DNA of 64,000 nt from Octopus sinensis (GCF_006345805.1 NW_021832120.1:314694-378693), one strand, 5' to 3'. Numbered from the stretch's first letter, positions 1-47,042 are shown. Notes: generated by a model from the sequence alone, not told the origin. Made by a program: numbers and translations.

Positions 1-458
1 CTCCCAATAATACAATACGCGTCATCTAGGATTCCGCAAATCTTATTAGCTAATCTGGTTAAAGCAGATTTCACTATTGAAAATTCTAAAAAAGAATCCT
101 ACAAAACAAGAATCTATTAATTAAATTACTAAATTACCCAGGAATAATTTTTATTTCGTGTCAATAGCGTCTTAAGTCGATAAGATCTACAATTTATCGT
201 TATCTTAGGTAAGAAGTAAAAATAGACGTTATTAATGTTTTAGTCGCAAGGAATCGTTTTAACTAGAATTAATAAAATTGGTAATTTAAATCGAGGTCTG
301 TCTCAATCTGGGATCAAATTGTATCATTCTGGGATCGGTGCTAATTTGTGATGGCGTTGTGTCGAAAAATTTTTCATAATAACATTTTTTAGAGACATTA
401 ATCTAAATAGGACGTGATAAGAAGATTGTGTATTTAATTTATACTTTACTTTCGTTTA

Positions 459-2748
459 ATGTGTCAAATGACAGAGGAGGACGTGCGCGTTTCATTCCAC
501 GTATCAAAAATCGTTGATAACCTAAATAATGTGGGAAGACTAAAAAGATCTCCGAATGCATTTCATTCACTTATTGTTTCTAATATAAAAATGATTTACG
601 CTCCTTTGAGAATTAAAAAAATTGTAAAGTTAAGTTGTGGATATTATAGTTCTAGAAATCAGCTCATGCTTAAATTTTTCGCTGACGAGGACCGAAGTAA
701 GACTCTTTCTGTCATAATCGTATGTTTTAATTAAAAATAAATTATCACAAGAAAGAAGAAATCAAAATAAAAACAAAATTCAGAATAGACTTCTCGTGGG
801 ATAAACAACTTAGGGAAATATCAAGTAACTTATTCGTTTCACTATTTTCAGTCCGATTTGGATCTGGTATTTGGTCATATTTTGATTTACTTCGAGGATT
901 AATATTTTTGAATTTATTTTCTGGCTTTATTAATCTCATGTTTGTATATATTCCTAACTATTTAATTTATAATGACGACGACCCTTATTTATTTGATTTT
1001 CAAAATCCAACAAAACAATTCGCAACTGCCAAAAACTGCAGTTTAAAATACCGTTTCAAAAATACTCAAGTCAGTCTGATGTGGTCAACTTTAGACATTT
1101 TTCGGTCAATTTTCATATGGATCGTACAAATCAATATATTACAAAAACGGAATGAACTACGACATATCGATAGCATATTTGATATCATTCATCATTTGTT
1201 ATTTCATTACACTAGTGTATCTTATTTACAGGCTAGACTGTGATTCATAACATTTTCAGGTCGAATCTAAATCATAAACATTCCAATATGATCAAATGGG
1301 AAGAAATGTCCCGAAATATATTTTCAGAATACATTTACTGCATTGATTTATCAAATACTGGCTTTAACATGCTGGGACGAACACAATTTGAACTAATTAA
1401 CAAAATTAGAGTTAATTACTAATTGCTTATTTCAGATGCGGCTTGGTAAAATCGAAAAACTTCAAATACAACACAAAAAAACATTGAAAAAAAACGTATT
1501 AATTCACTTGAAGAGATTTTTAATTAATATGTCGATATTTACTATGTTAATAGCATGTGGATATGGAATATACGGAACAATAGAATTATCATCGCGGGTT
1601 TACTCTGCTATTTACAAGTTTAAAGGATAAATATACGCAGAATACATCACATATTAATACTTTTGTTCAATATTCACCTTCTATTCTGATTGCAATGCTC
1701 AATATAATTATTCCTAAATTGATGGAAACGATATCTACCTTTGAAGAATACAGTGCTAAGACTCAAGTCACTCTCACACTGGTCAGGTAAAAAACTTGTC
1801 ATTATTGTAGGTCGATTCTTGTCAAATTGTCGTCTCTAATTCTGGTTGTATATTCACTGTTCATGCTGATCAGATGTGAGCCAAAAAATACATGTTACGT
1901 GAGTATGGGCAAGTGTCATTCAATACCGGTGACAGAAAATGTCAACATTTTTAGTGTTGGGAATCATATTGTGCAGACCAATTTTATAGATTGGCAATCA
2001 CTAGTTTTGCGATGGGAATTTTTGCCGATTTTTGTGTAAATTTTGTCATTAAGTTGTATTCTTATTTTATCCTATAGAACGGTCAGTCATCGTAAATATA
2101 TCAATAAATTGATAAAAGCTCCTAATTTTTCTTTATTTACTTGTGTCCTGGACTTGGTTTACTTACAATCTATTACTTGGTTATTACTTAAGCTGTATTT
2201 TAGGCTGGCTGCTATATTTTCTCCTCTTTTTCCATTACTGATTGGAGTGGGATTTATTATTCTGTTTTATTTAAAATTGGTTTGAAAGTTTTATTTGATT
2301 TAGTTTGGACTATACAAATTCTTATCGATCCAAGAAAAATCCTACACATTCATTCGTACCATCGACTTGTTTTATAAATTGCTATTGTCACAATTCACTA
2401 TTGTGTCTCTACTAGTGTGGTATATTATATTTGAGTAATATTTTTGTTTTTTACTATAGACAGCCAGTTTCTAAATCATGTGGACCCTTTAGACAATATA
2501 CGACGATGCTGGGCACTTTAAAAAAGTCGTTTGACTCAACAAAAATAACACAAATTATCACATCAAAAACATCTGTACTGTTCATAATAATAATTCTTAT
2601 GTATAAATATTGTGTTTTTGTTATTTTTAGAATTATTATCAGTCAACAGAAAAGTAAATTGAAACATGTCACCAAAATTCTAAACAAAGCAAAAAAATCT
2701 CTTAACGCAGAAAGAAACAAAACTGATATAATTAACTCTCCTTTCTGA
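459..2748 (+). CDS. TMC: Transmembrane channel-like (TMC) protein, 14 exons, 648 aa, apparently intact
   Basis: Manual splicing of 13 introns (720-751, 825-851, 1070-1094, 1232-1259 GC-AG, 1411-1435, 1598-1625, 1787-1810, 1929-1954, 2053-2077, 2180-2203, 2280-2303, 2435-2459, 2601-2630) gives one stop-free 1947-nt frame. TMC motifs: RFGSGIWSYFDLLRGLIFLN, FEEY, CWESYCADQFYRL, FSPLFP, SKSCGPF. Subfamily not resolved. Confidence 0.85.
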
Positions 2749-2829
2749 ACTTTTCTTTTCCTGCTAAATAATATATCTCATTAACATTAACAAAATTATC
2801 TTTATATTTTAAAAAATTTAAGGTTGATT

Positions 2830-3260
2830 TTTAAGTTAAAAAATTTTCGCCCTACTCACATACGGACACCGTATAGAACAGATCTTTAAATTGGATGTTG
2901 AGCTTCCGCGTTTAATCACCTACACTACAATAAACAGAAACTACAAAGAAGAATAACTAATCATCTTCCTACCTCAAATTAATTAAAAATATATGTCGTT
3001 AGTTGTTTCACCATTCTCATCTTCGATCAAGTACATGTTATTTTGTTGGTCTGCCACAACATATTTGTCTTTTCCTTTCTATCATTCTAACTCCAGCAAT
3101 AAAAAGTTTTGAATACACTTCTTCACATGAATCTTCGATTGCACTATGCACATTTAAATAATAATTGTTCCATTTCAGCTCCGTTATTGGATTCTGATTT
3201 TGAGCATCCATGAACAAGTAGAACGGAATTTTTCCGATTGTAGAATGTATTTTTATTGTA
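2830..3260 (-). mobile_element. Degenerate retroviral-type integrase C-terminal remnant (Ginger/gypsy-like)
   Basis: HSTIGKIPFYLF resembles the integrase H-S-T-G-x-T-P-F motif; downstream VGD...RKLNIQFKD resembles the GPY/F region; stops present. Confidence 0.4.
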
Positions 3261-4291: not shown

Positions 4292-5666
4292 TAGTCCGTT
4301 TCACAGATACCCCGAATTGGGGCAGACCCCAGGGGTGGGGCACCCCCGCATTTTGGGGCACTTTTTTTTGGCCAACATTTTGGCAGAGTAAAATGGAAGA
4401 TCGATAAAAAATACGGAAATTTTGGGGCACTATAAAATTGTAGGGAATGAAGTAAATAAAATTATATTTTATTAATAAATACATAATTTAAATTTACACG
4501 TTTACTTACATTTTTTTGTTGTCAGTGGTTATAAACTACGAAACAAACAAAATTAAAGATTGCTAAATTGATATCGAAGAAAAAATTATCTGAAAGACAG
4601 ATAATTCAAAAATATAAAACTAGCAAAGGCATGATTTCACGAATAAAAAAAACAATTGTGCTTTTTCTTGAACAAGGAACTGTAAACACGGATGAAGATC
4701 CTATGCCTTATTGTGAGAAATCGAAATTTGATGATCAAGTTTTTGAAATATTTCAGAAACTACGGGAAGATAAAGTTCCAATATCAGGTCCTTTTATAAA
4801 GAAAATCGCCTTATATACGGCTTCAAAGATTGGATTTGATTTTTTCAAAGCTTCAAACGGCTGGCTTGACAGATTCAAAAAGCGTCATGAACTGAGATTC
4901 AAATCAATTTGTGGAGAGAAAAATTCATCTGACTTAATCAATGAGTTTTTTAAAATCCTTGACGAGAAAATTGCGGAATATGGAAGAGGAAATGTTTTTA
5001 ATTGTGATGAAACAGCGCTTTATATAAAAAGGACACCGAGAAAGTCGTTTGTCGGAATAAATGACGATACTTTTGGCTTTAAACAGGGAAAAGAAAGAGT
5101 CACCGTACTTCTTTGTTGCAATTCTATGGGAGAAAAACTTGAGCCATTGATTGTTGGAAAATTTAAAAACCCTCGATGTCTCAAAAATTCTGCTAATTTC
5201 TAAAAGCTGGGAAAAACTTGATCCGAGTTTAATATTTAATTGTTGGAATCAAATTGAAAAGATTCGTGATTCCGTAAGAATTGAAGATAGGATTACAGAA
5301 GAATTAATCAACAATGCCGTAAACGAAACATTGGATGGGGAAAATGACGAATTCGTCGATGATATTTATAACGAAGGTTTAGAAAACGATAACATGGAAA
5401 CAAGTCTAAGAGAAACGCAAGATTCTCTTGATCAGTTAGAAAAGAACATTTTTCACATATCTCCTGAAATGCTCAAAGAATTTTACGATTTTTGACTTAA
5501 TTTTATGAAAAATGTAAGAAGTAAGAGGAAAACTGGGGATAAATTAACTGATTATTTTTCTAAAATTGATTTTTGATGTTTAAAAATCTCTGTTTTATTA
5601 AACCCCTGTTTTTGTGGCACCCCCGCTTTTTGGGGCACTTGGTTCCCCAATTCGGGGATCGGACTG
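4292..5666 (+). mobile_element. pogo/Tigger (Tc1-mariner) element, internally deleted
   Basis: ORF 4568-5203 has a CENP-B-like HTH (FKASNGWLDRFKKRH) and DDE_1 start (FNCDET); TIR core CCCCGAATTGGGG at both ends; right end followed by TA; left TIR degenerate. Confidence 0.85.
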
Positions 5667-13826: not shown

Positions 13827-15333
13827 CAGTCCGACCCCAAAATGGGCAGACCCCAGGGGTGGGGCACCCTCGGATTTTGGGCACCCCCGCAATTTGGGGC
13901 ACTTTATTCCAAAAGTACATTTTGGCAGAAAAAAATAAAAATCGATAAAAAATTATGGAATTTTTGGGGCACCCTAAAATCATTTATAAGGAATTAAAAA
14001 TAAAATAAAATTATAATAAATTAATTATTTTTTGCGGGATGCCATAAACTTGAAATATTTCAAAGACTACGCGTAGATAAAATTCCGATTTCAGGCCCTA
14101 TTTTGAAAAAAATTGCCTTAGTTACAGCTTCAAAAATTGGATTTACTTCTTTTAAAGCTTCCAATGGGTGGCTTGATAGATTTAAATTGCGGCATGAACT
14201 TCAATTCAAGTCAATATGTGGTGAAAAAGCTTCATGTGATTTATCTTATGTGAAAAATTATTTTGAAAAATATGACCAGAAAGTATTAAATATGGACCTG
14301 AGAATATATTTAATTGTGATGAAACTGCGCTTTTTATAAAAAGAACTCCTCAAAAATCATTTGTTGAACAAGGCGAACCGTGTTTGGTTTAAACAGGGAA
14401 AGAAAGACTCACTGTTCTTCTATGCTGCAGTTTAATCGGGGAAAAACTTAATCCATTGATTATTGGAAATATAAAAAACCTCGGTGTCTAAAAAATTTTG
14501 ATGTTCAAGATTTTGGGTTATTGTATTCATCTTCTCAAAATGCATGGATGACTGGAAAGACTTTTATGAGTTGGCTTACACTTATAAATGAATCGTTTTG
14601 CAAAAACAACAGAAAAATATTATTAATACTTGACAATGCGGGATGCCATAAAACTGCCGAATGTTCGAACATCGAATTTTTATTTTTGCCGAAAAATACA
14701 ACGCCCTATTTACAACCTTTGGATATGGGAATAATCAAGATTTTTAAAGATTATTATTCCTCTTTCTTAATGGAATTTTTATGTTTTCAAGATTTCGAAA
14801 ACGATTTTACACATTCTATTGGTAAATTAAATTTGCGTCAGGTTATGATGCTAATTTCAAAAGGATGGGAGAAAATAGATGCTAAAAGTATTGTTAATTG
14901 TTGGAAGAAAATCGACAGGAACCGTGATTCTTATGCAACAAAAAACTGTCTAACAGATGAACATTTAGATCAAGTTGTTAACGAAACAATTGATGGAGAA
15001 TGCGAAGACATGAACAATAATGTTTATGATACATATTCAGAAACCGAAAATAGTGAAAATGTCGTAGCAAAAACAAAAGATCTGCTTAACAATTTAGAAG
15101 AAAAAATTTCTAATGTTGCACCAAGTATGCTCCGAGATTTTTTTGATTTTCGGCGGAAATTGACGAACAATATCAGACAAAACTCTACAAATAAAAAGAA
15201 AATAACTGAATATTTTAGTAAAAATGTTTTTTGATGTTTATTAATGGTTTAATTTTTAAAAAAATAACAAACCCTGTTTTTGGGGCACCCCCGCATTTTG
15301 GGGCACTTGGTGCCCCATTTGGGGGTCGGACTG
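13827..15333 (+). mobile_element. pogo/Tigger element with both TIRs and TA target duplication, 5'-deleted transposase
   Basis: TA|CAGTCCGACCCC ... GGGGTCGGACTG|TA; AWMT, LLILDNAGCH, LQPLDMGIIK motifs; same family as 4292-5666. Confidence 0.92.
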
Positions 15334-31479: not shown

Positions 31480-33250
31480 CCTTGTGCGCGTGAACAACAA
31501 TACTGTCCCACAACCTTCTCCAGGTGCCTCATTTAGCATCGATGGAAGTGTTGTCCTTGGTCTTCCTCGGAATGCGTCTCCGCATTGCATATTGGCAGTA
31601 CAAACGAGTTGTATATCCTTATTTTCGTTTTTCCAGTAAGCTTCTTTTTAGTTCCCCATAGAGACATAAGCTTTCTAAAGGCTCCATTAGAAAGGATTTT
31701 CCTTCGGGTAACATCCTCTGTGTCTCCCAGGAGCGTTCCCAACTTTTTGCGCCTTCTCCATGATTCATCAATGCGTCTTTCCGATCGGCTTAAGGATATA
31801 TATTCGGTTTTTTCGGTGTTCACAGTGAGAAAGAGAATTTCTCCGTTGTCCGACACAAAGTCCAAGTCATCTGCGTAGGATATTCCGTGATAATCATTTT
31901 TTATAACTGATTTAAAGTCCCTCAGAGCGGCCTCAAGATACACAATAAAAAGCACGGGAGATAGCGAGTCTCCTTGTGGAACACCCCGTGTTGTTTCGAA
32001 GTATCTTGATGTCGTCTTTCCGACTTTAACGGCAAGTTGGGTGTTCACTAGGAGAAGGTTTATCATTCTTGTTTCGTCTGAATGGAGGAAGCTCTTTAAT
32101 ACTTCCATAAGGAGCCCTCTGTGAATGGAGTCGAAGGCCCGAGTCATGTCTACCCCAAGAATTTCAATACACTTTTTATATTTTTGGCACAGGGCACCAG
32201 TCCATCAGTATGTCCAAATTACATCACCTGTTGATCTTCCCTCCCTGAATCCACTCTGTCCATGGGATAGAAAACTGTTTACTCGGTCTTTGATTCGAGT
32301 CAGTATAATTAGCGATAATGTCTATCTCAATGTTGATAGCAGAATAATCGGCCTCAGGTTGCCAGGAGGTCCTCTCGGTTTCCCGGGTTTTGGTAGTGGA
32401 ATTAACAATCCTTTCCAATATCTAAGTTTCCGTTTTCTTTAATTGCTTTGTTCAGTATGTGTGTGATCACTTCGGCCAGCTCGATTGGTCTAAATTTGAG
32501 GAGCTCTGCAGGAATGTCGTCTGGTCCGGGGGACTTTTGCAGTTTAATTTCTTAATGGCATCCATAGTTTCTGTAATATTAATATGACTGATTATTCGAG
32601 TGTCTTGAATGTTCAGAATTTCATTGACTTCGCTATTTTGGTTGAAAATTTCGTGGAAATATTCCGAAATGATTGCAGTTTTTTCAGGTTCACTAATAAC
32701 TGTTCTTCCAAGTTTATCATGCACAGTAATATGGTTTGTTCTTTTTCCTCTGTTTATTAAACGAACAGCTTTTAACATCCTCGTTCCATTCTTATATTTT
32801 TCAATTTCAGCCACTTGCTCCTCAACTTCTTTTCGTAATTGACGTTTTCTCCGTCCATAATATGTTTGCCGGCTGGCTTATGTCAATTTTGTTAATTTCT
32901 CTTCTGAGATTTTCACTGTACTCAATTCTCTTTGATTTGTCGTAAACAAGTTTCTCTGTGTCGATGGTTTCCATTTGTCCTGTTCTTTGTACGCCAACTG
33001 TCCCATGTAATCTCTTTAAAACAATCCTAGTCACAACCACTTAATGATCACTGCTGGTTTCAAGGCCATCTCTTTAAAACAATCGTCTCTTGGAGACAGC
33101 AGATACTGACACGGTGATTCCAGAGATCCCGTGCAAGTTGGTGCTGTTTGTAAATGGATTTCAGTCCTCTTGTGTTAAAGCTCCCAAGTGAAAACGTGGG
33201 GGACGTCGTGAAAGTTGTAAAACGCGAAAAACACATATCCGTAACAGACA
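31480..33250 (-). mobile_element. RTE-clade LINE, internally deleted and frameshifted
   Basis: GSFNTRGL...CCLQET jumps to SDH; RT motifs RAFDSIHR, GVPQGDSLSP, YADDL. Confidence 0.88.
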
Positions 33251-35450: not shown

Positions 35451-35804
35451 CGATAATAACAAAATTTTACTTCAAAATATTATTTCTGCTGGTTAAGTAA
35501 AAGAAATTGATTTTAACGTGTCAACATTGCTAGGATAGATTCTCAAAACTCATCCCATTATTATTTATCTCAAAAAAATGAAGAAAGCTAAAATTGGATT
35601 TTGACAAATAATAAAATTATCGGACAGTAATTTTTTCCAGTAAATATTGCAACTAAGCGCATCTAATTGGACTATTAGAAACGAATGTTTGGCAATTGTA
35701 TGTTTTCTAATGCTTTAAATAATGTAATGCTTTAAATTGCGTATTATTTAATAAAATAATTTTGAGAATGTCTATACGATGGTCGAGGTCGATATACCGG
35801 GAAA

Positions 35805-38800
35805 TTATTATTATTAGCACTGTCATAGGAACATAATGTAATTTAAACTAATTAAGTTCCCACATGTGCCACATATGAGACTATCTTTTCGGTCATAATT
35901 TTCCATGATGTGCGGTTGTATGCTATACTCCTGAGAGTATCTAGGTCGTCTCCATTTTTCAGTTGTCTTTTAACGCGTTGTAGTTCTTTTGAGATTACAA
36001 TAGGTAATGTATTTCGTGGGCGTCCTCGGGACGCAGATCTTTCGTCCTTTGCGTAATATGATTCCATTGCCCAGTTAGCATAGACATCCTGGTCGAGTCT
36101 TAGAATGTGGCCCAATAGGCGCCAACGTGCTTCGGTAATGTCCACACTGACGGGTCTGCTGTTGCAGATATTGTATAGGGTGGAGTTCTTGATTTTCTTT
36201 GGCCAGTTGATGCCAATAAGAATTCTTAACTGTCTTCTATGGAATGCATCAAGAGATTTTGATTCAGACTCAGATATTCCCCATGTTCCTCCGTTGTACA
36301 AAAGTATGGGTTTAATAAAAGCATTGTATAATTTGGCACGTAAGGCCGTTCCAACCTCGCGGTTTCGTAGCCAAGTGGTCCGCAGTTTGTTAAGTGCAAC
36401 AGTCGATAGCATCTTTCTCCTCATAATGTCTTCACTATCTCCTAAAAGAGTTCCAACTTTTTTCGAGTTTCGCCATTTTTCGTCTGTCCTATTTGCCTTT
36501 TTCGGTTGAGTTAGTGACGCAACTCTATTGCACAAAGTCTTAATCACATATGAGGCTACAAAGAGATTTTACTTTGCTATCATTCAATGTCAGAGGACTA
36601 TCTGACCTATCCAAGCGAAAAATCCTATGCCGGGATCTGAATGCATATGGTGCAACTATCGGATGCTTTCAAGAAACGAAGGTCAAAGGCGGGCTAGATG
36701 AGATACACAACGAGTATCGAATCATTCTCCTTCCATCAGAATCACGTCATTATGGGCAGGGGTTTGGCATTCATAAGACCTTTTGGAATTCAATTCACAA
36801 ATACTACCGTGTGAACGACCGCATATGTGTACTACAACTGAGACAAAAAACTTTGACCAACACGGATCGAATAATCAGCATTATAAATGTCTACGCCCCA
36901 CAAAGTGGAAGACTGAAGAAGAACGTGGATGAACTAGACTCTTTCTATCACATGCTATCAAAGACCTACACGAGTATAAAAACATCCTTCCTTATACTAA
37001 TTGCCGGTGATTGGAATGCTAAGGCAGGCAAAGGCCGTGGTGAAGAAGTGTTCATGGGCAGACATGGACGGGGGATAAGAAATGCACCAGGTGAAATGCT
37101 TGTGAACTTCTGCAGCATATTCAAGCTACTGCTATGCAATACGGTCTTTCCTCATGCGGCACGTCATAAAACCACGTGGACCGGACTAGAAGAAACAAAA
37201 ATGGGGAGTACGTCAACATCTATAATCAAATCGATTATATCATCTGTAGACAAGAAGAAAAACATCGATTGCTGGATGCCAGGTCATATGGCGGGGCACT
37301 TACACTGAGCGATCACAAAGTCATTGTGGCACGATTGAGACTGAAAAGAATTTTTGGATCGCCTCTTTCAAAAGAAAATGAATCAAACCGAATTAGATAC
37401 TCAGTGGAAAAACTGATTACATCAGATGTTACCAAGGAAAAATACTCCCAGGCAATCATCGAAAACCTAAAAGTAACAGAAACGGTAAAAGACCCAAACA
37501 AAAGCTGGGATATATTAGAAAAACTTATTCACAAAGCTGCAACGGAAACCATTGGAACGACTGCATTCAGAAACCACTCAAACCCATTGAATCCAAATGT
37601 TGCCGAAATGGCAACAAAACAAAAAGCCATCCAACTGAAAATTGAAAACACCAACGACAAGGAGGCAAAGGAAAAACTCAAAAGAGAACGTAGGAAAATA
37701 TCGAGAACAATCAAGAAGGAAAATCTTAAATACGTGAAAGCTTTATTAAACTCTCGAATATCAGAAGTTGAAGACTTAAAGGATGGTGCGCAAATGTACG
37801 CAGCCATCAGACTACTACGCCGACGACAACAGAAAACAAAACTGGTTGTGCACGATGAACATGGGAAAACAATTGGAAACCCAATCGAAATGGTAAATAC
37901 AATCGCCGACCACTTCGAAATACTATTCAATGGCAGGGCCGATGCTCTCGATGAGGGTGAAGAACGTTATCTAAACAACAAAATAACACACCTTGAAGTT
38001 TTGAAGGCTATAAAAAAATTAAAAAACAACCGTGCGGCGGGTCCAGACAACATCAACGGTGAATTGATAAAGTACTCCCCAATGGAGATCTCAACTATAA
38101 TCACAAATCTCCTGAACGAGATGTTCCATGGAAATACCATACCGCCTATTGGGAAAGGAACGCTAATTCCTCTCCAAAAACCCAACAAGCCGCAAGGTCC
38201 TCTTAACAACATTCGCCCAATCATACTCTTGAACACAATAAGGAAAATCTTCTCACTCGTAACACTGGAACGTATTAAGGACCCTGTTAATGAATATCTG
38301 TCGGCTAGCCAAAGTGGATTCAGGCCTGGGCGATCAACTGCAGATGTAGTATGGGGACATAGATGGATCTGTGCCATATCTCAGAAATTTAAAATGGCGA
38401 CCACAATATTGGGCATTGATATGAGCAGGGCATTTGATACAATCCGCAGAGACAAGCTAATGGAGATCCTCAAAACCATTCTTGACAATGACTCGATCAG
38501 AATGGTTCGAGCACTACTTATAGACACCGAGTTAACGGTGAAGATCGGACCCGTACAATCAAGATCTTTCAAAACAAGCATTGGAACGCCCCAAGGTGAT
38601 TCAATATCACCTGTACTATTCATTGTCTATCTTGAAGCGGCACTAAGAGATCTGAGAAAACTAGTGAAGACTACTTCAATAACTGAAGTGATATATGCCG
38701 ACGATGTAGACTTTTTGTCTCATGATAAGTCGACACTCGAAGAACTGCTGAACATTGCTCCTCATGCACTGGAAAAATGGTTCTTAAAAGTGAACATAGA

Positions 38801-38823
38801 AAAAACCGAATATGTAACAATCA
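35805..38823. mobile_element. Near-full-length RTE-clade LINE with inverted 5' segment (APE+RT on + 36510-38823; C-terminus and tail on - 36509-35805)
   Basis: APE SFNVRGL/FQET/GDWNA/QIDY/SDH; RT GTPQGDSISP, YADD; (TAA)4 tail at 35805-35816; flanking ATACCGG(G/A)AAA at 35794-35804 and 38824-38834; one frameshift near 37180. Confidence 0.92.
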
Positions 38824-39699
38824 ATACCGGAAAATAAATAAATAAAAATAATTTGTGTTAAATTTTTTTTACTTATTTAAATTGTTGGAGACTGGAACAA
38901 GCAAAGCTTCAAATGGAAATTATTGGACAGCATAGGAGGACTCATTATAAGAATATATTAGTGATTTCTGCAACATGAAACCTCTATGCTTGTAAATATG
39001 ATATTTAAGCAAAGAGCTAAGACACGACAACATAAACCGGCAAAGAATCAAAATAGAATATCAGTTTATGTACTCGTATTCCATTTTTGGTAAATAAAGG
39101 ACCTTAAAACTCCTTCGCCAAATGGGCCGGTTATTCTTTTATTTTTTAATTGAGAATTTAATTTAAAATATTTTGACAAGATATATTTGTTTCTAAAAGT
39201 CAGAATCCTGGATAATTTTAAATTTTATTTGTAATTTGAAAGTTTGATTTTACTCATATTGAAGTGGAATGTTTTGGGATGTATTTAACCAATCTCCCTT
39301 TTACATAAATGTCTTTTTTTACTTTCAGCCTACTTTCTTTTGGCTCCCTAAATGATAACATACGTGTAATCGGTGGTTTCTTTCTTCATTCTCCTAGCTT
39401 TAAAAAAGTACTCAACATATAATTTTTTAATCCTTTTACTTCCAACCAAAATGTAGGTCATCAAATGTATAGTTTTCATAAAGAATATACTATATTACAT
39501 TCATTTGAAGAAGCGTTTCAATTTTGTAGTTCATTATGTCCTCATTATCTTTTCCGCTTTATATCTTACATTCCCTCAATATTATCAGCTCCATAAGCTG
39601 ATTTGACCTACAAATTAATTTTGACAATCCAACTCCATGTGTTATGGCCACTCTCATGTCAAAACAATTGTCACATGTGTACCATACAATTATTATCAG

Positions 39700-42610
39700 A
39701 GAATAGAATAGAATAGTGTTTATTGAGCGAAAAGAAAAAGAAAAACAAGGAAGAAAAACATCGGCGGGGAGATAAAAACAAGGCACCGAAGTGTCTCTTT
39801 CCATGCGTATCCCCAATACTAGTCATGTTTGACGACAATTCTCCAAGACCATCCGGATCGTGGGCACAGAGGATTCTTGTGAGTCTTTTAGCCTTCCGTC
39901 AAGTTGTACTCCGTAAGCCAATTTCATAGCGAAACGTCTTGTCTTTTCCAACTGTTCGATCAGGTAGTCACTCTCCTCCGTACCGTACCAGCCCTCGTAG
40001 CCATATGTGAGGACTGGCTGCACACACGTTTTGTATACGTAGATGTACGTTTCCGGATCCAGATGGAACCTGGTTAAGCTTTTGAGGATCCTCACACTCC
40101 TCTTTCTCTGATTTGCTATATGCTCTACGTACGAGCCACGACAGTTAATGGTTGCTCCCAGGTAAGAAAGATTTTTTTTTTTCGAGAGATCCATCACATA
40201 GCTACTCATCGCATATGCACAAGACTCCGCATAGCGACTCCCTCTCCGCAACCATGAAATGGTGCTCTTCTCCGGTGCTAGGGTCAAACCCTTCTCTATA
40301 GTCCACATCTTTAGCGTTGCAATGTATGATTTCAGTCGTCTCCAAGACTGCGATATCCTTTTCGAGGTATCCATGACCAGGATATCGTCAGCATAGATAA
40401 CGAGCTTGCCAGTACGTGTCGACGGCAGAGGAATGTCCGCCAAGAAGAGGTTGAACAGAAGTGGACTCAAGATAGATCCCTGCGGGACTCCCCTTCTAAG
40501 TTCCACACACCCCGATAGGCGGTTTCCACAGCGGACAAATGATTGTCTTCCTGACAAGAAGCTCTCCAGCCATCGATAGGTCTTTATCCCGGCTCCGATG
40601 TCATGGATTCTGGAGAGTAGGCCCAGGTGCCACACGCTATCGAAGGCTTTGGCCAGATCCAGACACACCACAGTTAGCCATGCTTCATTTCTGTCAGCAC
40701 GGGATAATTGGTGCTCTAACTCCCTGAGGCAGTCCCCTGTGGATCTTCCTCCACGAAATCCCCATTGTTCAGGTAAAAGCAAATTTTGTGATTCTATATG
40801 ACCAGAGAGTCTGTTAAAGACAATCTTTTCCATTGTCTTAGAGAAAGCACAGATGAGGCTAATTGGCCGGTAGTTCTCTTCTAGCAGTGTCGATTTACCA
40901 GATTTTGGAATCATTCGAACAATCGTATGCTTCCACGCCGATGGAAGGTGTCCGAACGTCTAGCTGGCGTGAAACAACATAGTCAGTGCTCGTATCAAGA
41001 TTTCAGGGGCCTTTTTTAACAACATCTGAGGGATGTAGTCGAAGCCAGGCGCCTTGTTCTTCAACCCAGCAATTGCCCTTTTAACCTCTTCCTGTGTTAT
41101 CGTCCACATAATGGTCCCTCGGATAATTGCAAAGAGCCAAGCTTGTTCACAATTCGGTCATAAGTCCCTCGTGGAACGGTAGATTCGACCTTTTGAACAT
41201 GACTGAGTTGGTTCCTGAGTACTTCCGGGATACGATCAGAGGAGATATATTTCCCGTCTGGTTCTTTTAGTGAAATTTCAAATCCTTTGGCATCATTTCT
41301 GGTAAGGCGTTGATATGCTTTCTAGAAATTAGGGGTTCGCTTATCCAGTTTTCTGCATTCAGACCTCCATTTACATTCGACCTCAGTCTTGGCCATTTTT
41401 GCAATAGTAGATTTTATCTTTCGATCTCCAATTTCAGGCGGCATTTGATTGACTCAACCCGACATCTTCTCCTGCGATTTTCCAGGGTACCTTTCGTTCT
41501 GATCAGAGTGACAAGTTTCGAATTCATCCGCTTTTGCGTTCCTTTGGGTTTCCATACATTTTTTAATGCATAAACATCCAGGAATTTTATGATTGACGAT
41601 CTAAGGTGATCATCGAGATTGTCAATATCATCTCTGCTTCTCAGAGGCTGAGACACGACATTTCGAAGAGAATCCCGCATATATGATTCGAATAAACTCC
41701 AGTTCATGTTCACGAGGTTGTAACCAATGAACAAGTCCTCCGTAACATTCATAGTCATCTTTATCAACATCGTTTGCGGCACGTGGTCAGAGCCAATGTC
41801 CGCTTCCAACCTCGGTATGTAACATAAAGGACTAATTGATGCCGAGCATAGAAAGAGACCCAAGCGATCAGCCCTGCCTCTGTCTGCATAATGATTCACT
41901 TCTTCCGATGTAAAGACCGAAAAACCCAAGCTACTGGCCAAGTCCTCAAGGACAGTTCCATCCATATTCGTAGTTTCACATCCATAACTCACATTTTTGG
42001 CATTAAGATCTCCTGCTAGGATTGACAGGCAATTTTCCTCAAAGAACGTCCCAATAACGTTTGAATAGCGCCTTAGCGACTTTGAGTACATTCCCCCGAC
42101 GGTTAGCCAGCCAGCAGTCGTGTGCAGCTCGAGCACAATAAGTTCACAGAGTGACTCCTCCACAATTCTGATGTTTCTTACCTTAAGGTTCGCCCTGTAG
42201 TAGACTGAGGTTCCTGTCCCCGCCACTGAGTTTATTTTCCATGGTATATTAATAGACTTATAGCCTTCGAATTCCACCCTCGTAGCTTCCTTCAGCTTAG
42301 TCTCATTGATAATCAATATGTGAGACTTCGCTGTGGCCAGCAGGAGCCTCAGCTCCGATGCCCGTCTCGCAAGCGAGCGGGCATTTAGAATTGTCAGAGC
42401 AAGGAATCCTTCCGACATGGGTGGCTGACCTCCCGTGGGAGCGCCACCTTTTTCGGTAAAGGGGGTCTGCCTGCTTTCCGTTTGCCACCGGTTTCAGCCG
42501 GCTCTGGAGGCGTCCCATCGTCCTCCAGCCGGGCTTCAGGGCTTGGCAGCTGAACTCCAGATTTTGCTACTGCAGTTTTCTTCACTGCTCTCGCCTTCGG
42601 GGCGGTTATA
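39700..42610 (-). mobile_element. APE-RT LINE (Jockey/CR1-L2-like) with ORF1 remnant
   Basis: APE ILNARSL/INETKL/AGDLNA/SDH (41414-42418); RT YRPISL, GVPQGSILSP, YADD (39823-40914); AATAAA then (TATTC)n tail at 39700-39716; linker has stops. Confidence 0.88.
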
Positions 42611-45399: not shown

Positions 45400-46200
45400 G
45401 AGTTGGCGGATACGAGAGGGAAATCTTTACTTTCCCAAATGGAATCCTTAACAATCCTAAACGACCCATCGAGGTACACAAGGACACAATTCAGAGTGAC
45501 TGACAAACCTATATCATCCGATGTAACTCTATGATCTTCATTTCTCGCATCATCTACGGAGTGCTCAGTCCTCTATGAAACGAGAAGCGATCACAACCCC
45601 ATCGCGGTGAAGATCAAGAGAAGTTGTCACCAGGAAAGTTTCCATTCCATACAATTACAAAGCAGCCAACTGGCCATGGTTCCAAGAGATATTGAACACG
45701 AAACTAAAGAATTGCAATCTGTGCAACTTATCCCTAGCCCTTTTCAACCTTTTCTAGAAGATCTCCCCCCCTCCTTCGACAATAATGACATTGTCCTCTC
45801 ATACGTGGACGACATCGTATTAGCCTCACGAGACCGGGACATCCAGAAGGCCTCTGAAAGGCTCCAAGCTAATTTGGATCGGCTGAACTTATGGCTGACG
45901 GACAACCGGCTCGTGGTAAACGCGGCAAAGTCCGCCAAGTCCCTCTTCACTTCCGACAAAAGATTGGGAAGGACTTCAATCGACTTAAAGCTGAACAATG
46001 TGTCCATACCCTTCTACAGGAGTCAGACGGTCCTAGGGGTAACCCTCGACATGCACCTCTGCTTCTCCCCGCACGCAGACAACCTCCTTCGCAAATGCGA
46101 AAAAAAAACTGAACATCTTCAGAACTCTATCCGGCATATGGGAAAACAGGTCACACCCGGTCCTGGCGAATATCTACCGCCATTACTTCGAACCATCAAT
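45400..46200 (+). mobile_element. APE-RT LINE fragment with large internal deletion
   Basis: SDHNPI and NYKAANWPWF (end of APE) join directly to LFN/FLEDLP...YVDD...LGVTLD (RT core). Confidence 0.8.
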
Positions 46201-47042
46201 TCCCTACGCCTGCAGATCATGTTTTACAGAGGGTCGAATCTTAGTGCTCGACATGTATTTTTCTAAAATTATGTATTTATCTTTGTGACTTGGGCATATA
46301 ACACTAATAGACCTAAAAAATGGAACAAAGAAAAATTGGAACAAAAATCAGGTTAGTCATTTAGAACACCAAAAATTTTAATTTAAGCACAATCTTCTGT
46401 GCATAGAAGATTGCTGGGAGCAGGGTATCGACAAGGTTGCAATCTATTATGAGTAAACAAACACAACATATGCTTGTGCTGTGATTAGTATTGCTCCATT
46501 TACATTTGGAAATATTTGTACACTTTTGGGAGCTAATGTGATAAAATGAAAATTTTGTTCATTAGGCACTTTCGTAATCCTTAAGTAAACGAAGAAAAAA
46601 AGTAAGCAATTGGGTGGCTAAGGGAGAATCCTTAAATGAGAATAGCAAAGTATACATTGTGGGTTGGGACCCATTTGTGTAAATGCACATTTTCTTTCTC
46701 TCATTCATACTACACAGTCAGTAATTTAAAATACAAAAGGGCGACTGGATGACTGAATTTTGGCGACAGAAAAATGGAATTTGATGGCATTTCACTTTAA
46801 TGTAAAAATAGAATTCTTACAGAGTTCTTAAATTGCCTAGACTTGCAAAAGCATCTATATCCAGGTAAAGAAGATTACTGCAGAGATACAGTTATCTAGT
46901 GATTTAAAATATTTGAATGTACATCTGAAATAAGTGATCTAAGCTATCAAATGAATTTTTTTTAGTATTCTCGTTAATGAGTCTCTATTACACTTACTAG
47001 TATTAATTCTCCAAAGTTGGGATGAGTGGATTACTTTTTATT

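Follow-up and report, generated by a model that had tools for sequence, protein, structure and literature searches.

A single recent insertion of an RTE-like LINE of about 3.0 kb, with its 5' 2.3 kb inverted by twin priming, very probably occupies positions 35794-38834 of a 64,000-nucleotide stretch of Octopus sinensis DNA (GCF_006345805.1 NW_021832120.1:314694-378693; hereafter the window, with positions counted from its first letter). This reading, which an earlier note on the same DNA had put forward, is supported by the features seen here: one TSD, a direct tail-bearing arm, an inverted 5' arm beside the upstream TSD, and a near-exact partition of the element between the two arms. With its ORF divided between the two strands, the window copy was dead on arrival.

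The element family and its uninverted copies

The consensus of the octopus RTE-like LINE is 3,022 bp long, with a 47-nt 5' UTR, one intact 975-aa EN+RT ORF that stops at nt 2975, and a 35-nt 3' UTR followed by (TAA)n. The 35-nt 3' UTR and a (TAA)4-7 tail were present in 14/14 copies, with no poly(A). The first bases of the element (CGGTTGAGTTAG) were taken from uninverted and other copies, including L003 and L014, and the position of the 5' terminus is fixed by L003, L012 and L014. A domain search of the window arms returned RVT_1 (E=8.5e-31), with weak matches to Exo_endo_phos and Exo_endo_phos_2 that fell under the Pfam cutoffs, and gave no match for a zinc finger in the family. The EN part is named 'craniofacial development protein 2-like' by NCBI, a label that goes back to the domain which bovine Bcnt acquired from RTE-1/BovB and that hints indirectly at RTE affinity. 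The TSDs of the family are 7-14 nt long (mode 10-11), 10/13 of them begin with T, and a T run lies 8-15 nt upstream of the TSD in about half of the insertions. The architecture of the element, rather than an RT phylogeny, supports its putative assignment to RTE.

Two uninverted copies, L003 and L012, have the full length and serve as colinear references; L001/2, L004 and L006-L011 are uninverted and 5'-truncated. Identity of the uninverted copies to the window arms is 99.2-99.9%, except for L008 (97.6%), and the family is young and probably active. For reference at the breakpoint, an in-window paralogue (about 31506-33182) was set aside as too distant (53% aa identity), and copies of 99.8% identity were used instead. 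Indels between copies point to some consensus noise in the assembly.

Layout of the insertion in the window

Alignment to the uninverted copies bore out that the two parts of the insertion are arms of one element in opposite orientation; L001-L003 are colinear at 99.7-99.9% identity and confirm the inversion. On the left, the TSD copy ATACCGGGAAA (35794-35804, plus strand), which is the downstream copy in the sense of the tail, adjoins the (TTA)4 complement of the tail. The (TAA)4 microsatellite tail itself lies on the minus strand at 35805-35816, as had been claimed, and other copies have (TAA)4-7 in the same place. It is preceded on the minus strand by the 35-nt 3' UTR at 35817-35851, with the end of the window ORF at 35852, corresponding to the consensus stop at nt 2975. 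The whole direct, tail-bearing arm spans 35805-36498 on the minus strand (nt 2329/2330-3021; 99.7-99.9% identity to L001-L003) and codes for the last ~215 aa of the ORF (ANRTDEKW...AHVGT*).

Between the arms is a filler that reads TTTTT on the plus strand (36498-36502), where the consensus has GGA. Read the other way, the filler is AAAAA following the reverse complement of the 5' terminus, and it is untemplated by the element at that place. The T at 36498 is ambiguous and could belong to the direct arm or to the filler, so that the arm ends at 36497/36498 and the filler is 4-5 nt long.

The inverted arm (nt 1-2322/2323) follows on the plus strand at 36503-38823 and is 99.74% identical to L003 over 2,325 nt. 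It starts from element base 1, with the complete 5' terminus CGGTTGAG..., and ends in ...GAATATGTAACAATCA(A). It carries the 47-nt 5' UTR, the ATG at 36550, the EN domain and the larger part of the RT domain; that the inverted arm includes the start codon had been noticed before and holds on the plus strand. Compared with the consensus, a 1-nt deletion in a G run at 37183-37184 on the plus strand (GGG in the consensus, GG in the window) divides the ORF of this arm into 36550-37308 and 37176-38837. The right TSD copy ATACCGGAAAA (38824-38834, plus strand) is the upstream copy in tail sense, and its first A (38824) could equally be element nt 2323. The adjoining target flank TAAATAAATAAAAATAATTT (38835-38854, plus strand) is, in tail sense, a T-rich stretch that directly precedes a TSD with an initial T, an arrangement that is the published insertion signature of RTE elements (PMC6007223). 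The flanks around the insertion read ...GGTCGAT on one side and TAAATAAATAA... on the other.

One TSD and a near-exact partition

The two 11-nt TSD copies match at 10/11 positions and directly abut both outer ends of the insertion. A match of this quality at those ends, with a slack of +-2 nt, occurred in 128/200,000 random placements (p~6e-4), which upholds the claim that one near-perfect 11-bp TSD brackets both parts. The copies differ by one base, and ~0.03 substitutions are expected in 22 nt at the element divergence of 0.13%. Nothing comparable to a second TSD was found at the inner junction, and neither arm has a TSD of its own.

The element sequence at the breakpoint is AACCGGGAGG, and intact copies read across it as EYVTIN-RE-ANRTDEKW in protein (P0071) and ATCAACCGGGAGGCAAAT in DNA. 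Relative to L001-L003, the window lacks 5-6 nt, CCGGG(A) (nt 2324-2328/9; codons R-E). The protein had been described as resuming with essentially no loss; the partition is indeed near-exact, but these 5-6 nt are gone, and the 'PKK' that seemed to open the resumed protein is read-through of the reverse-complemented 5' terminus and the filler. By chance, breakpoints that arose independently would lie within +-6 nt of each other in about 0.4% of cases (p~0.004). The substitution rates of the two arms against the same consensus are 0.09 and 0.29 per 100 bp (the direct arm has 2 substitutions in 693 nt), and both arms are equally young. No long inverted duplication was found between the arms, which indicates a partition of the element, not a fold-back.

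The arm boundary had been drawn at 36509/36510. It has to be moved: 36503-36509 (CGGTTGA) belongs to the plus-strand arm, and the TTTT at 36499-36502 is filler. A parsing in which the 3' arm starts from TCAACCG and the 5' arm from GTTAGTG was rejected, as L003, L014 and the window all put CGGTTGA at the 5' end of the element; it also needs a change from GGA to AAAAA 7 nt inside an arm, for which it offers no explanation. In L014, CGGTTGA is fused directly to an unrelated position inside the element. The TCAACCG seen at the inversion point is the 5' terminus in reverse complement, followed by the 4-5-nt A/T filler, and is not the sequence that the element has at the internal priming site. The 8/9 match between ACCGGAAAA and ACCGAAAAA, on which primer complementarity had been based, exists as letters and was misattributed.

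The complementarity itself is retained on stronger support. The left TSD and element nt 2323-2329 have the exact 7-mer ACCGGGA in common (7/7 between the left TSD and AACCGGGAGG) at a 2-nt offset (p~0.006). In register, the window has only 1 nt of microhomology at the primer-2 site, and the 6-7-nt match needs a 2-nt bulge or extension from a mismatched 3' end, either of which would be plausible for LINE RTs. The predicted duplex of the overhang at the breakpoint has an energy of -14.4 kcal/mol and ranks second of three comparable sites on the 3-kb RNA, all three of which include CCGGGA. At the inversion junction, the window has at most 1 nt of microhomology (A/T at 36498) beside a 4-nt filler.

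TCAACCG, the reverse complement of the 5' terminus, is also identical to internal nt 2320-2326. This 7-nt coincidence permits an alternative, less parsimonious parsing of the inversion junction. Joining of the cDNAs through this 7-nt complementarity was rejected: it predicts GCCTCCCGGTTGA, and the window has GCCTTTTTCGGTTGA.

Inversion recurs in the family

Among 13 O. sinensis insertions, four further copies (L005, L013, L014 and L015) are independently inverted. They lie on different contigs of GCA_006345805.1 and have different breakpoints, perfect TSDs of 10-13 nt and the same geometry as the window copy. Since these four share the architecture and have perfect TSDs, mis-assembly or chance appears very unlikely as the origin of the structure. 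Arm ends were placed by automated exact extension, and the junctions of three copies with SNPs were resolved by eye. The inverted fraction in an orientation-unbiased subsample was 3/12 (25%, 95% CI 5-57%), which suggests that 5' inversion happens often in this family.

The arms join to within microhomology, as near-perfect partitions, in 3/5 inverted insertions; in the other two, no more than the initial ~40-50 nt of the element are inverted, and these are fused to a truncated 3' arm. The inverted arm extends to nt 1 in the window and in L014 and to within 1-3 nt of it in L005, and stops 14 nt short in L015. Counted in register, the five events have 1, 3, 4, 0 and 2 nt of microhomology at the primer-2 site (Fisher combined p=7.6e-4). 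At the inversion junction, microhomology amounts to 1-2 nt in the other four inverted copies, none of which has a filler.

Proposed course of the insertion

We propose that the element's endonuclease nicked the plus strand at ...ACCGGGAAA^TAAATAAA, and that the resulting 3' end, with the plus strand of the left TSD as the first-strand primer, primed cDNA-1 on the (UAA)n tail. A second nick 11 nt away would free the minus-strand overhang 5'-TTTCCCGGTAT-3'. The putative second primer, the minus strand of the right TSD (5'-TTTTCCGGTAT-3'), would then pair with the same RNA at CCGGGA(GG). Its final T would sit on A2323, with 2 nt bulged or mismatched, and it would prime cDNA-2, which would run 2.3 kb up to the 5' end of the RNA. 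The duplex of primer 2 and RNA would stop cDNA-1 at nt 2329/2330, and this stop would explain why neither arm contains exactly those bases that had annealed. A few untemplated A's would be added to the 3' end of cDNA-2 (...CTCAACCG), and a template jump or end joining would link it to the 3' end of cDNA-1, which would produce the 4-5-nt filler. Fill-in synthesis would create the TSD. Under this scheme, the pre-insertion site would have read ...GGTCGATATACCGG(G/A)AAATAAATAAATAAAAAT..., with the 11-mer present once.

A paralogous empty site was not found in ~270 kb (the rest of the window and 15 loci, with the joined flanks as query), where the only matches were 35-37-nt AT-rich chance ones, none of them across the junction. 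Exact-protein look-ups of the window ORFs (231 aa and 252 aa) found no record of the locus in another assembly, and a search for an anchor with the neighbouring 363-aa RT ORF (39823-40914) found no homologue at E<=1e-60.

The same geometry could also result if cDNA-2 was not primed by the annealed overhang, with a random start on the RNA or a template switch of the RT followed by end joining, and with CCGGGA fortuitous. The 1 nt of in-register microhomology in the window, its absence in L014, which has one extra base, and the unremarkable duplex-energy ranks of L005, L013, L014 and L015 would agree with priming of this kind. On the other hand, the terminal microhomology over the five events is above chance at the combined p of 7.6e-4, the bases deleted in the window are exactly those that the target matches, and the end of cDNA-1 is the start of the proposed primer duplex in three events. 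We consider this origin of cDNA-2 improbable.

A full-length insertion on the minus strand in which repair or recombination later flipped the stretch from the element/TSD boundary to an internal point would yield the identical final order of segments, and the filler and the 5-6-nt loss could then be scars of end joining. Such an event, however, needs one breakpoint exactly at element base 1 and the other at the target-matching CCGGGA, and no inverted repeats long enough for recombination are present at the breakpoints. A single young family would also have to undergo such an event five times, each time at a different internal point and with the TSD left intact, and L014 and L015 would require an extra deletion of ~1.6-1.8 kb. 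We regard a flip after integration as slightly more improbable again.

The element might also be colinear in the animal, with the 2.3-kb segment flipped by the assembler. A multi-copy family with 99.7-99.9% identity is a setting prone to assembler errors, and the indels between copies hint at consensus noise. An assembler flip, however, would not make the filler, the TSD-matching loss of 5-6 nt, or a TSD beside an internal position of the element, and it would leave four copies on other GCA_006345805.1 contigs with the same architecture, different breakpoints and perfect TSDs to be explained. The arms are also without overlap, unlike palindromic chimeric reads. An error of this kind has a lower probability still.

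Least credible, with hardly any chance of being right, are two adjacent independent insertions, a 5'-truncated minus copy and a tail-less plus fragment: nested and adjacent insertions are common in this region full of LINE and transposon debris, but 3'-truncated tail-less copies are not a product of target-primed insertion, the fragments complement each other in element coordinates to 6 nt or less (p~0.004), the pair has a single TSD with none for either fragment, and the arms are equally diverged.

Comparison with twin priming in other LINEs

Twin-priming 5' inversions of mammalian LINE-1 (L1) were reportedly described by Ostertag and Kazazian in 2001, and twin priming is the accepted explanation for 5'-inverted young L1 copies (~30%). 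The 5'-inverted share of young human and chimpanzee L1 insertions has been put at ~31%, and about 95% of L1 inversions have microhomology (Kojima 2010, PMC2912911). The octopus family resembles L1 in having a direct tail arm, an inverted 5' arm beside the upstream TSD, one TSD of at least 10 nt, a small loss at the arm boundary, and microhomology that ties the upstream end of the target to the internal priming point; its inverted fraction of 25% (3/12, CI 5-57%) is also comparable to that of L1. Unlike L1, the octopus element has a single ORF, a microsatellite tail instead of poly(A), TSDs of 10-12 nt instead of ~15 nt, and a mollusc host. At the inversion junction, the window has the 4-5-nt A/T filler, whereas microhomology is frequent, though not obligatory, in L1.

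Yamaguchi, Kajikawa and Okada (2014) proposed that 5' inversion needs a 3' overhang of 10-20 nt pairing with the LINE RNA, and cited a peak of 10-12 bp for the TSDs of the RTE clade (PMC4245944). The TSDs of the octopus inverted copies (10-13 nt, 5/5) fit both the overhang proposal and the RTE peak. In the assays of that study, 5' inversion was restricted to human L1 in human cells, apart from one Nimb-2_DR insert, and it was concluded that 5' inversion depends on the LINE species and the host (PMC4245944). In the octopus, by contrast, inversion is frequent, in a non-L1 element and in an invertebrate.

RTE elements have an ORF of ~920-1,070 aa in an element of ~3-4 kb, with an N-terminal APE-type endonuclease followed by the RT (PMC1291365), and a short 3' UTR that ends in AT-rich simple repeats (PMC1291365, PMC2887409). 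The octopus element is like RTE-clade LINEs (C. elegans RTE-1, BovB, schistosome SR2/SR3 and lepidopteran RTEs) in size, single ORF and short UTRs, and its T-initial TSDs with an upstream T stretch follow published RTE patterns (PMC4245944, PMC6007223). RTE-2_OV, an RTE expressed in the brain of Octopus vulgaris, is ~4.5 kb long and has a 3,327-nt ORF (1,109 aa), a C2H2 zinc finger and UTRs of ~600 nt (Petrosino et al. 2022, PMC9115989). The two elements have the same genus and clade label, are young and apparently active, and carry a 3' microsatellite. Identity with RTE-2_OV is ruled out by the size and domains of the present element (3,022 bp, 975 aa, 47/35-nt UTRs).

Implications

Our literature search found no report of 5' inversion in RTE elements or in molluscs, though a mention of RTE inversions in Ichiyanagi and Okada (2008) is possible, and it appears that twin priming has so far been documented almost only for mammalian L1. 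We think it rather likely that target-primed reverse transcription by an RTE-clade element in a mollusc intrinsically and often (in about 1/4 of insertions) leads to twin priming. If so, cDNA-1 would typically be halted by the duplex of the second primer, leading to loss-free partitions, and cDNA-2 would usually end at RNA base 1 or a few nt off and might gain untemplated A's. In that case, 5' inversion would be no peculiarity of L1 in mammalian cells, and would instead be a general consequence of a second-strand overhang of at least 10 nt that is able to anneal to the template RNA. The octopus RTE family would then extend twin priming to another clade and another phylum, at a rate similar to that of L1.

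The octopus data fit the idea that the length of the overhang decides whether second priming can occur. Active RTE, Dong-R4, CR1 and L1-Tx1 families coexist in octopus genomes (PMC13282606), and if octopus LINE families differ in TSD length, this idea could be tested by a genome-wide census. LINE activity has been claimed in octopus brains, and the topic is a live one (PMC9115989). Inverted copies hold nearly every base of the element and yet are dead on arrival, which affects counts of 'potentially active' octopus LINEs. Repeat annotators report such copies as two matches, and gene predictors report them as paired 'genes'.

The arms of the insertion compared with a colinear copy

The 15 loci compared with the insertion at window 35794-38834 are GCA_006345805.1 contigs encoding the O. 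sinensis protein P0071, its cluster mates, or two EN-domain proteins. One of them, L003, carries the element uninverted and at full length (3,021 bp), and both window arms match it in opposite orientations. Element nt 1-2323 corresponds to window 36503-38824 on the plus strand (99.74%), and element nt 2329-3021 corresponds to window 36498-35805 on the minus strand (99.71%). Divergence from the family consensus gives both arms the same young age (0.09 and 0.29 substitutions per 100 bp). In a protein search with the RT-containing ORF, P0071 was 100% identical over the covered part, and its reading ...EYVTINREANRTDEKW... is uninterrupted across the breakpoint originally proposed.

The minus arm carries the (TAA)4 tail (35805-35816) and a 35-nt 3' UTR, then the ORF with the C-terminus ...SYVAHVGT*. 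On the plus arm, the ORF starts with the ATG at 36550 and encodes an endonuclease domain (weak hits to Exo_endo_phos and Exo_endo_phos_2 that stay under the Pfam cutoffs), with the RT domain downstream (RVT_1, E=8.5e-31). The family majority consensus is 3,022 bp long, with one intact 975-aa ORF (nt 48-2975), a 47-nt 5' UTR, and a 35-nt 3' UTR followed by (TAA)n. Relative to this consensus, the window copy has 4 substitutions and a 1-base deletion in a G run at 37183-37184, and it is because of this deletion that the ORFs 36550-37308 and 37176-38837 are out of frame. The G run belongs to a further ACCGGGA (element nt 680-686), and the lost base may reflect a true mutation, a mistake by the RT, or a homopolymer error in the assembly consensus.

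Junctions and target-site duplication

The L003 copy starts directly after its TSD with CGGTTGAGTTAGTGACGC, and the L012 copy starts with GGTTGAG. L014 has ...CTAACTCAACCG, the 5' terminus in reverse complement, fused to an unrelated site inside the element. Hence CGGTTGA at window 36503-36509 is the element 5' terminus on the plus arm. The earlier note had read the same bases as a breakpoint sequence, TCAACCG, on the minus strand, and its 'PKK', taken as the resumption of the protein, is a read-through of the reverse-complemented 5' terminus and filler. The filler at the inner junction is 4-5 nt long, TTTT at 36499-36502 and an ambiguous T at 36498. Across the breakpoint, uninverted copies read GTAACAATCAA|CCGGGA|GGCAAATAG. 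Since the window plus arm terminates at ...ACAATCA(A) and the minus arm opens with (A)GGCAAATAG, CCGGG(A), encoding codons R-E, is missing from both arms.

A single TSD surrounds both arms, as first proposed. The 11-mers ATACCGGGAAA (35794-35804) and ATACCGGAAAA (38824-38834) lie directly outside the left and right ends and match at 10 of 11 positions, which only 128 of 200,000 equally placed random pairs reached. Repeats of this length and match are common elsewhere in the surrounding 3.2 kb; the significance of the TSD repeat is its position, not its existence. The sole mismatch is a C-to-T on the strand that would be exposed as single-stranded overhang. At the divergence of the window copy, 22 nt should have gained only about 0.03 substitutions, so this change may date from integration itself.

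Complementarity of the target site to the element RNA

The ACCGGGA in the left TSD copy equals element nt 2323-2329, a stretch running 3' from the point where the inverted arm stops. A run of at least 7 nt in common with the 22-nt breakpoint stretch was found in 0.6% of random genomic 11-mers, and CCGGG in 0.2%. CCGGGA occurs three times on the whole 3-kb RNA, and the overhang 5'-TTTCCCGGTAT-3' at the real site gives the second-best predicted duplex (-14.4 kcal/mol). With primer and RNA in register, pairing is limited to the terminal T on A2323, and for the hexamer it requires a bulge of two primer bases. While these sequence matches are observed, we infer the pairing details of the primer-2 overhang on the RNA. 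The tail-primed cDNA-1 would be stopped by the primer-2:RNA duplex and cDNA-2 would start on its other side, so that loss of exactly the paired bases would be expected; the element bases deleted are exactly the paired ones. The case made earlier for primer complementarity is amended and, through ACCGGGA, made stronger.

Recurrence of 5' inversion in the family

Four more inverted insertions were found, each with its own perfect TSD of 10-13 nt and a different breakpoint. In L005 (L005:8018-11034), the inverted arm covers element nt 2-4..1086 and the direct arm nt 1084..3021, with the TSD TTAGTCTTGG, 3 nt of microhomology at the primer site and GG at the inversion junction. In L013 (L013:3935-6608), the arms are 351..2385 and 2384..3021, with the TSD (AA)TCAAACTAA, 4 nt of microhomology and AG at the junction. 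The inverted piece is merely the first ~40-50 nt of the element in L014 (L014:5181-6620; 1..49 inverted, 1631..3021 direct; TSD (T)ATTTCATATCTA; no microhomology, one extra T; junction G) and in the older, 1.4% diverged L015 (L015:5358-6604; 15..54 inverted, 1813..3021 direct; TSD TGTGTGTCGC; 2 nt of microhomology; junction GT), and in both, 1.6-1.8 kb of internal sequence is lost in addition to the inversion. The window insertion (1..2323 inverted, 2329/2330..3021 direct; TSD TTT(C/T)CCGGTAT) has 1 nt of microhomology in register plus ACCGGGA at an offset of 2 nt, and its arms, like those of L005 and L013, meet to within the microhomology. The in-register values over the five events (1, 3, 4, 0 and 2 nt) are far above those at random RNA positions (Fisher p=7.6e-4).

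Sampling via the 3'-end protein cluster does not depend on orientation, and of the 12 independent events reached in this way, 3 were inverted (25%, exact 95% CI 5-57%); L005 and the window copy were left out of this rate because their ascertainment was biased. For insertion counts, L001/L002 and L009/L010 were merged, as each pair is one insertion on two contigs. Their flanks are 98-99.98% identical, and each pair probably represents haplotypes left uncollapsed or a very recent duplication. The window event is not isolated, as 5' inversion recurs in this young octopus RTE family.

For a normal insertion to be inverted after integration, one breakpoint would have had to hit precisely nt 1 and the other the hexamer matching the target, on five occasions, and no inverted repeats that could drive recombination were found at the locus. 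Two independent insertions side by side would not have one TSD in common, and a tail-less fragment would have to end just where its neighbour starts (p~0.004). If the assembler had flipped a segment of a colinear element, the flip would leave no filler, no TSD-matching loss and no TSD copy next to an internal part of the element, and the error would have to recur on five contigs. A fold-back fails since the window arms partition the element with no duplication between them. Taken together, the sequence argues that the window insertion is an RTE-family insertion inverted by twin priming; the original observation was real and its interpretation very probably right, with the junction coordinates corrected.

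Comparison with known elements

In geometry, TSD, near-contiguous arms and microhomology, the window insertion resembles L1 twin priming, and about 31% of young L1 insertions are 5'-inverted, about 95% of these with microhomology (Kojima 2010, PMC2912911). It would be a further case of an already known kind of event, the twin-priming 5' inversion. Yamaguchi et al. 2014 (PMC4245944) saw 5' inversions only with human L1 in human cells and in one Nimb-2_DR insert, suggested a requirement for a 10-20 nt overhang, and cited a TSD peak of 10-12 bp for RTE. The octopus inversions fit this overhang-length rule and extend the phenomenon; no report of 5' inversion in RTE elements or molluscs was found in the literature searched, and an earlier mention may exist elsewhere.

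Like RTE-clade elements, the octopus element is about 3 kb long, has its EN and RT in one ORF, and closes with AT-rich repeats after a very short 3' UTR (PMC1291365, PMC2887409); its TSD is T-initial and downstream of a T stretch, the RTE signature (PMC6007223). By this architecture it is a putative member of the RTE clade. RTE-2_OV, with 4.5 kb, a 1,109-aa ORF and a zinc finger (PMC9115989), was ruled out as the same element given the 3,022-bp length and 975-aa ORF of the family, which plausibly belongs among the 13 RTE families reported as recently active in O. vulgaris (PMC13282606).

Further observations

CGGTTGA (36503-36509) is the exact reverse complement of TCAACCG, which adjoins the internal priming site on its 5' side (element nt 2320-2326; window 38817-38823), and this 7-nt coincidence caused the initial mis-parsing of the inner junction. 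It could pair the RNA 5' end with the breakpoint region; no evidence of its use was found, and cDNA joining via the heptamer was rejected, as the predicted junction differs from the observed one. An A run follows the reverse-complemented 5' terminus (...CAACCG-AAA...) in window 36498-36502, L003:3820-3823 and L014:5230-5232; the A's are filler in the window, TSD in L003 and element sequence in L014. The L012 5' junction has four extra bases, CTCT, instead. Such bases at the 5' terminus may have been added to the cDNA end without a template, and the window A/T filler would be compatible with untemplated A addition followed by a microhomology search.

RefSeq gene models lie on pieces of this family at L005:10001-11041 (protein P0121), L008:6001-12625 (P0141, a Sec1-domain gene fused with the element RT) and L004:10001-12525. 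An inverted arm is labelled 'craniofacial development protein 2-like' and 3' arms 'uncharacterized protein'. Such models are artefacts of annotating young LINE copies.

At 34.7% GC the window is AT-rich, with transposon debris throughout; in essence it is a transposon graveyard, and no host gene is obvious. The paralogue used as yardstick in the earlier note (EYISLSRSERRIDESW; ~31506-33182, minus) is a fragmented copy of a different RTE-like family, with an aa identity of ~53% in the RT and 41% towards the C-terminus. Another LINE remnant (39823-42418, minus), some 1 kb beyond the right end of the insertion, holds a 334-aa ORF with Exo_endo_phos_2 and a 363-aa ORF with RVT_1, the latter with 0 homologues at E<=1e-60 in a large protein collection. 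Pogo/Tc5-like DNA transposase fragments (HTH_Tnp_Tc5, DDE_1) and a further weak RT fragment lie at 4568-5203, 14521-15234 and 45607-46266, all on the plus strand.
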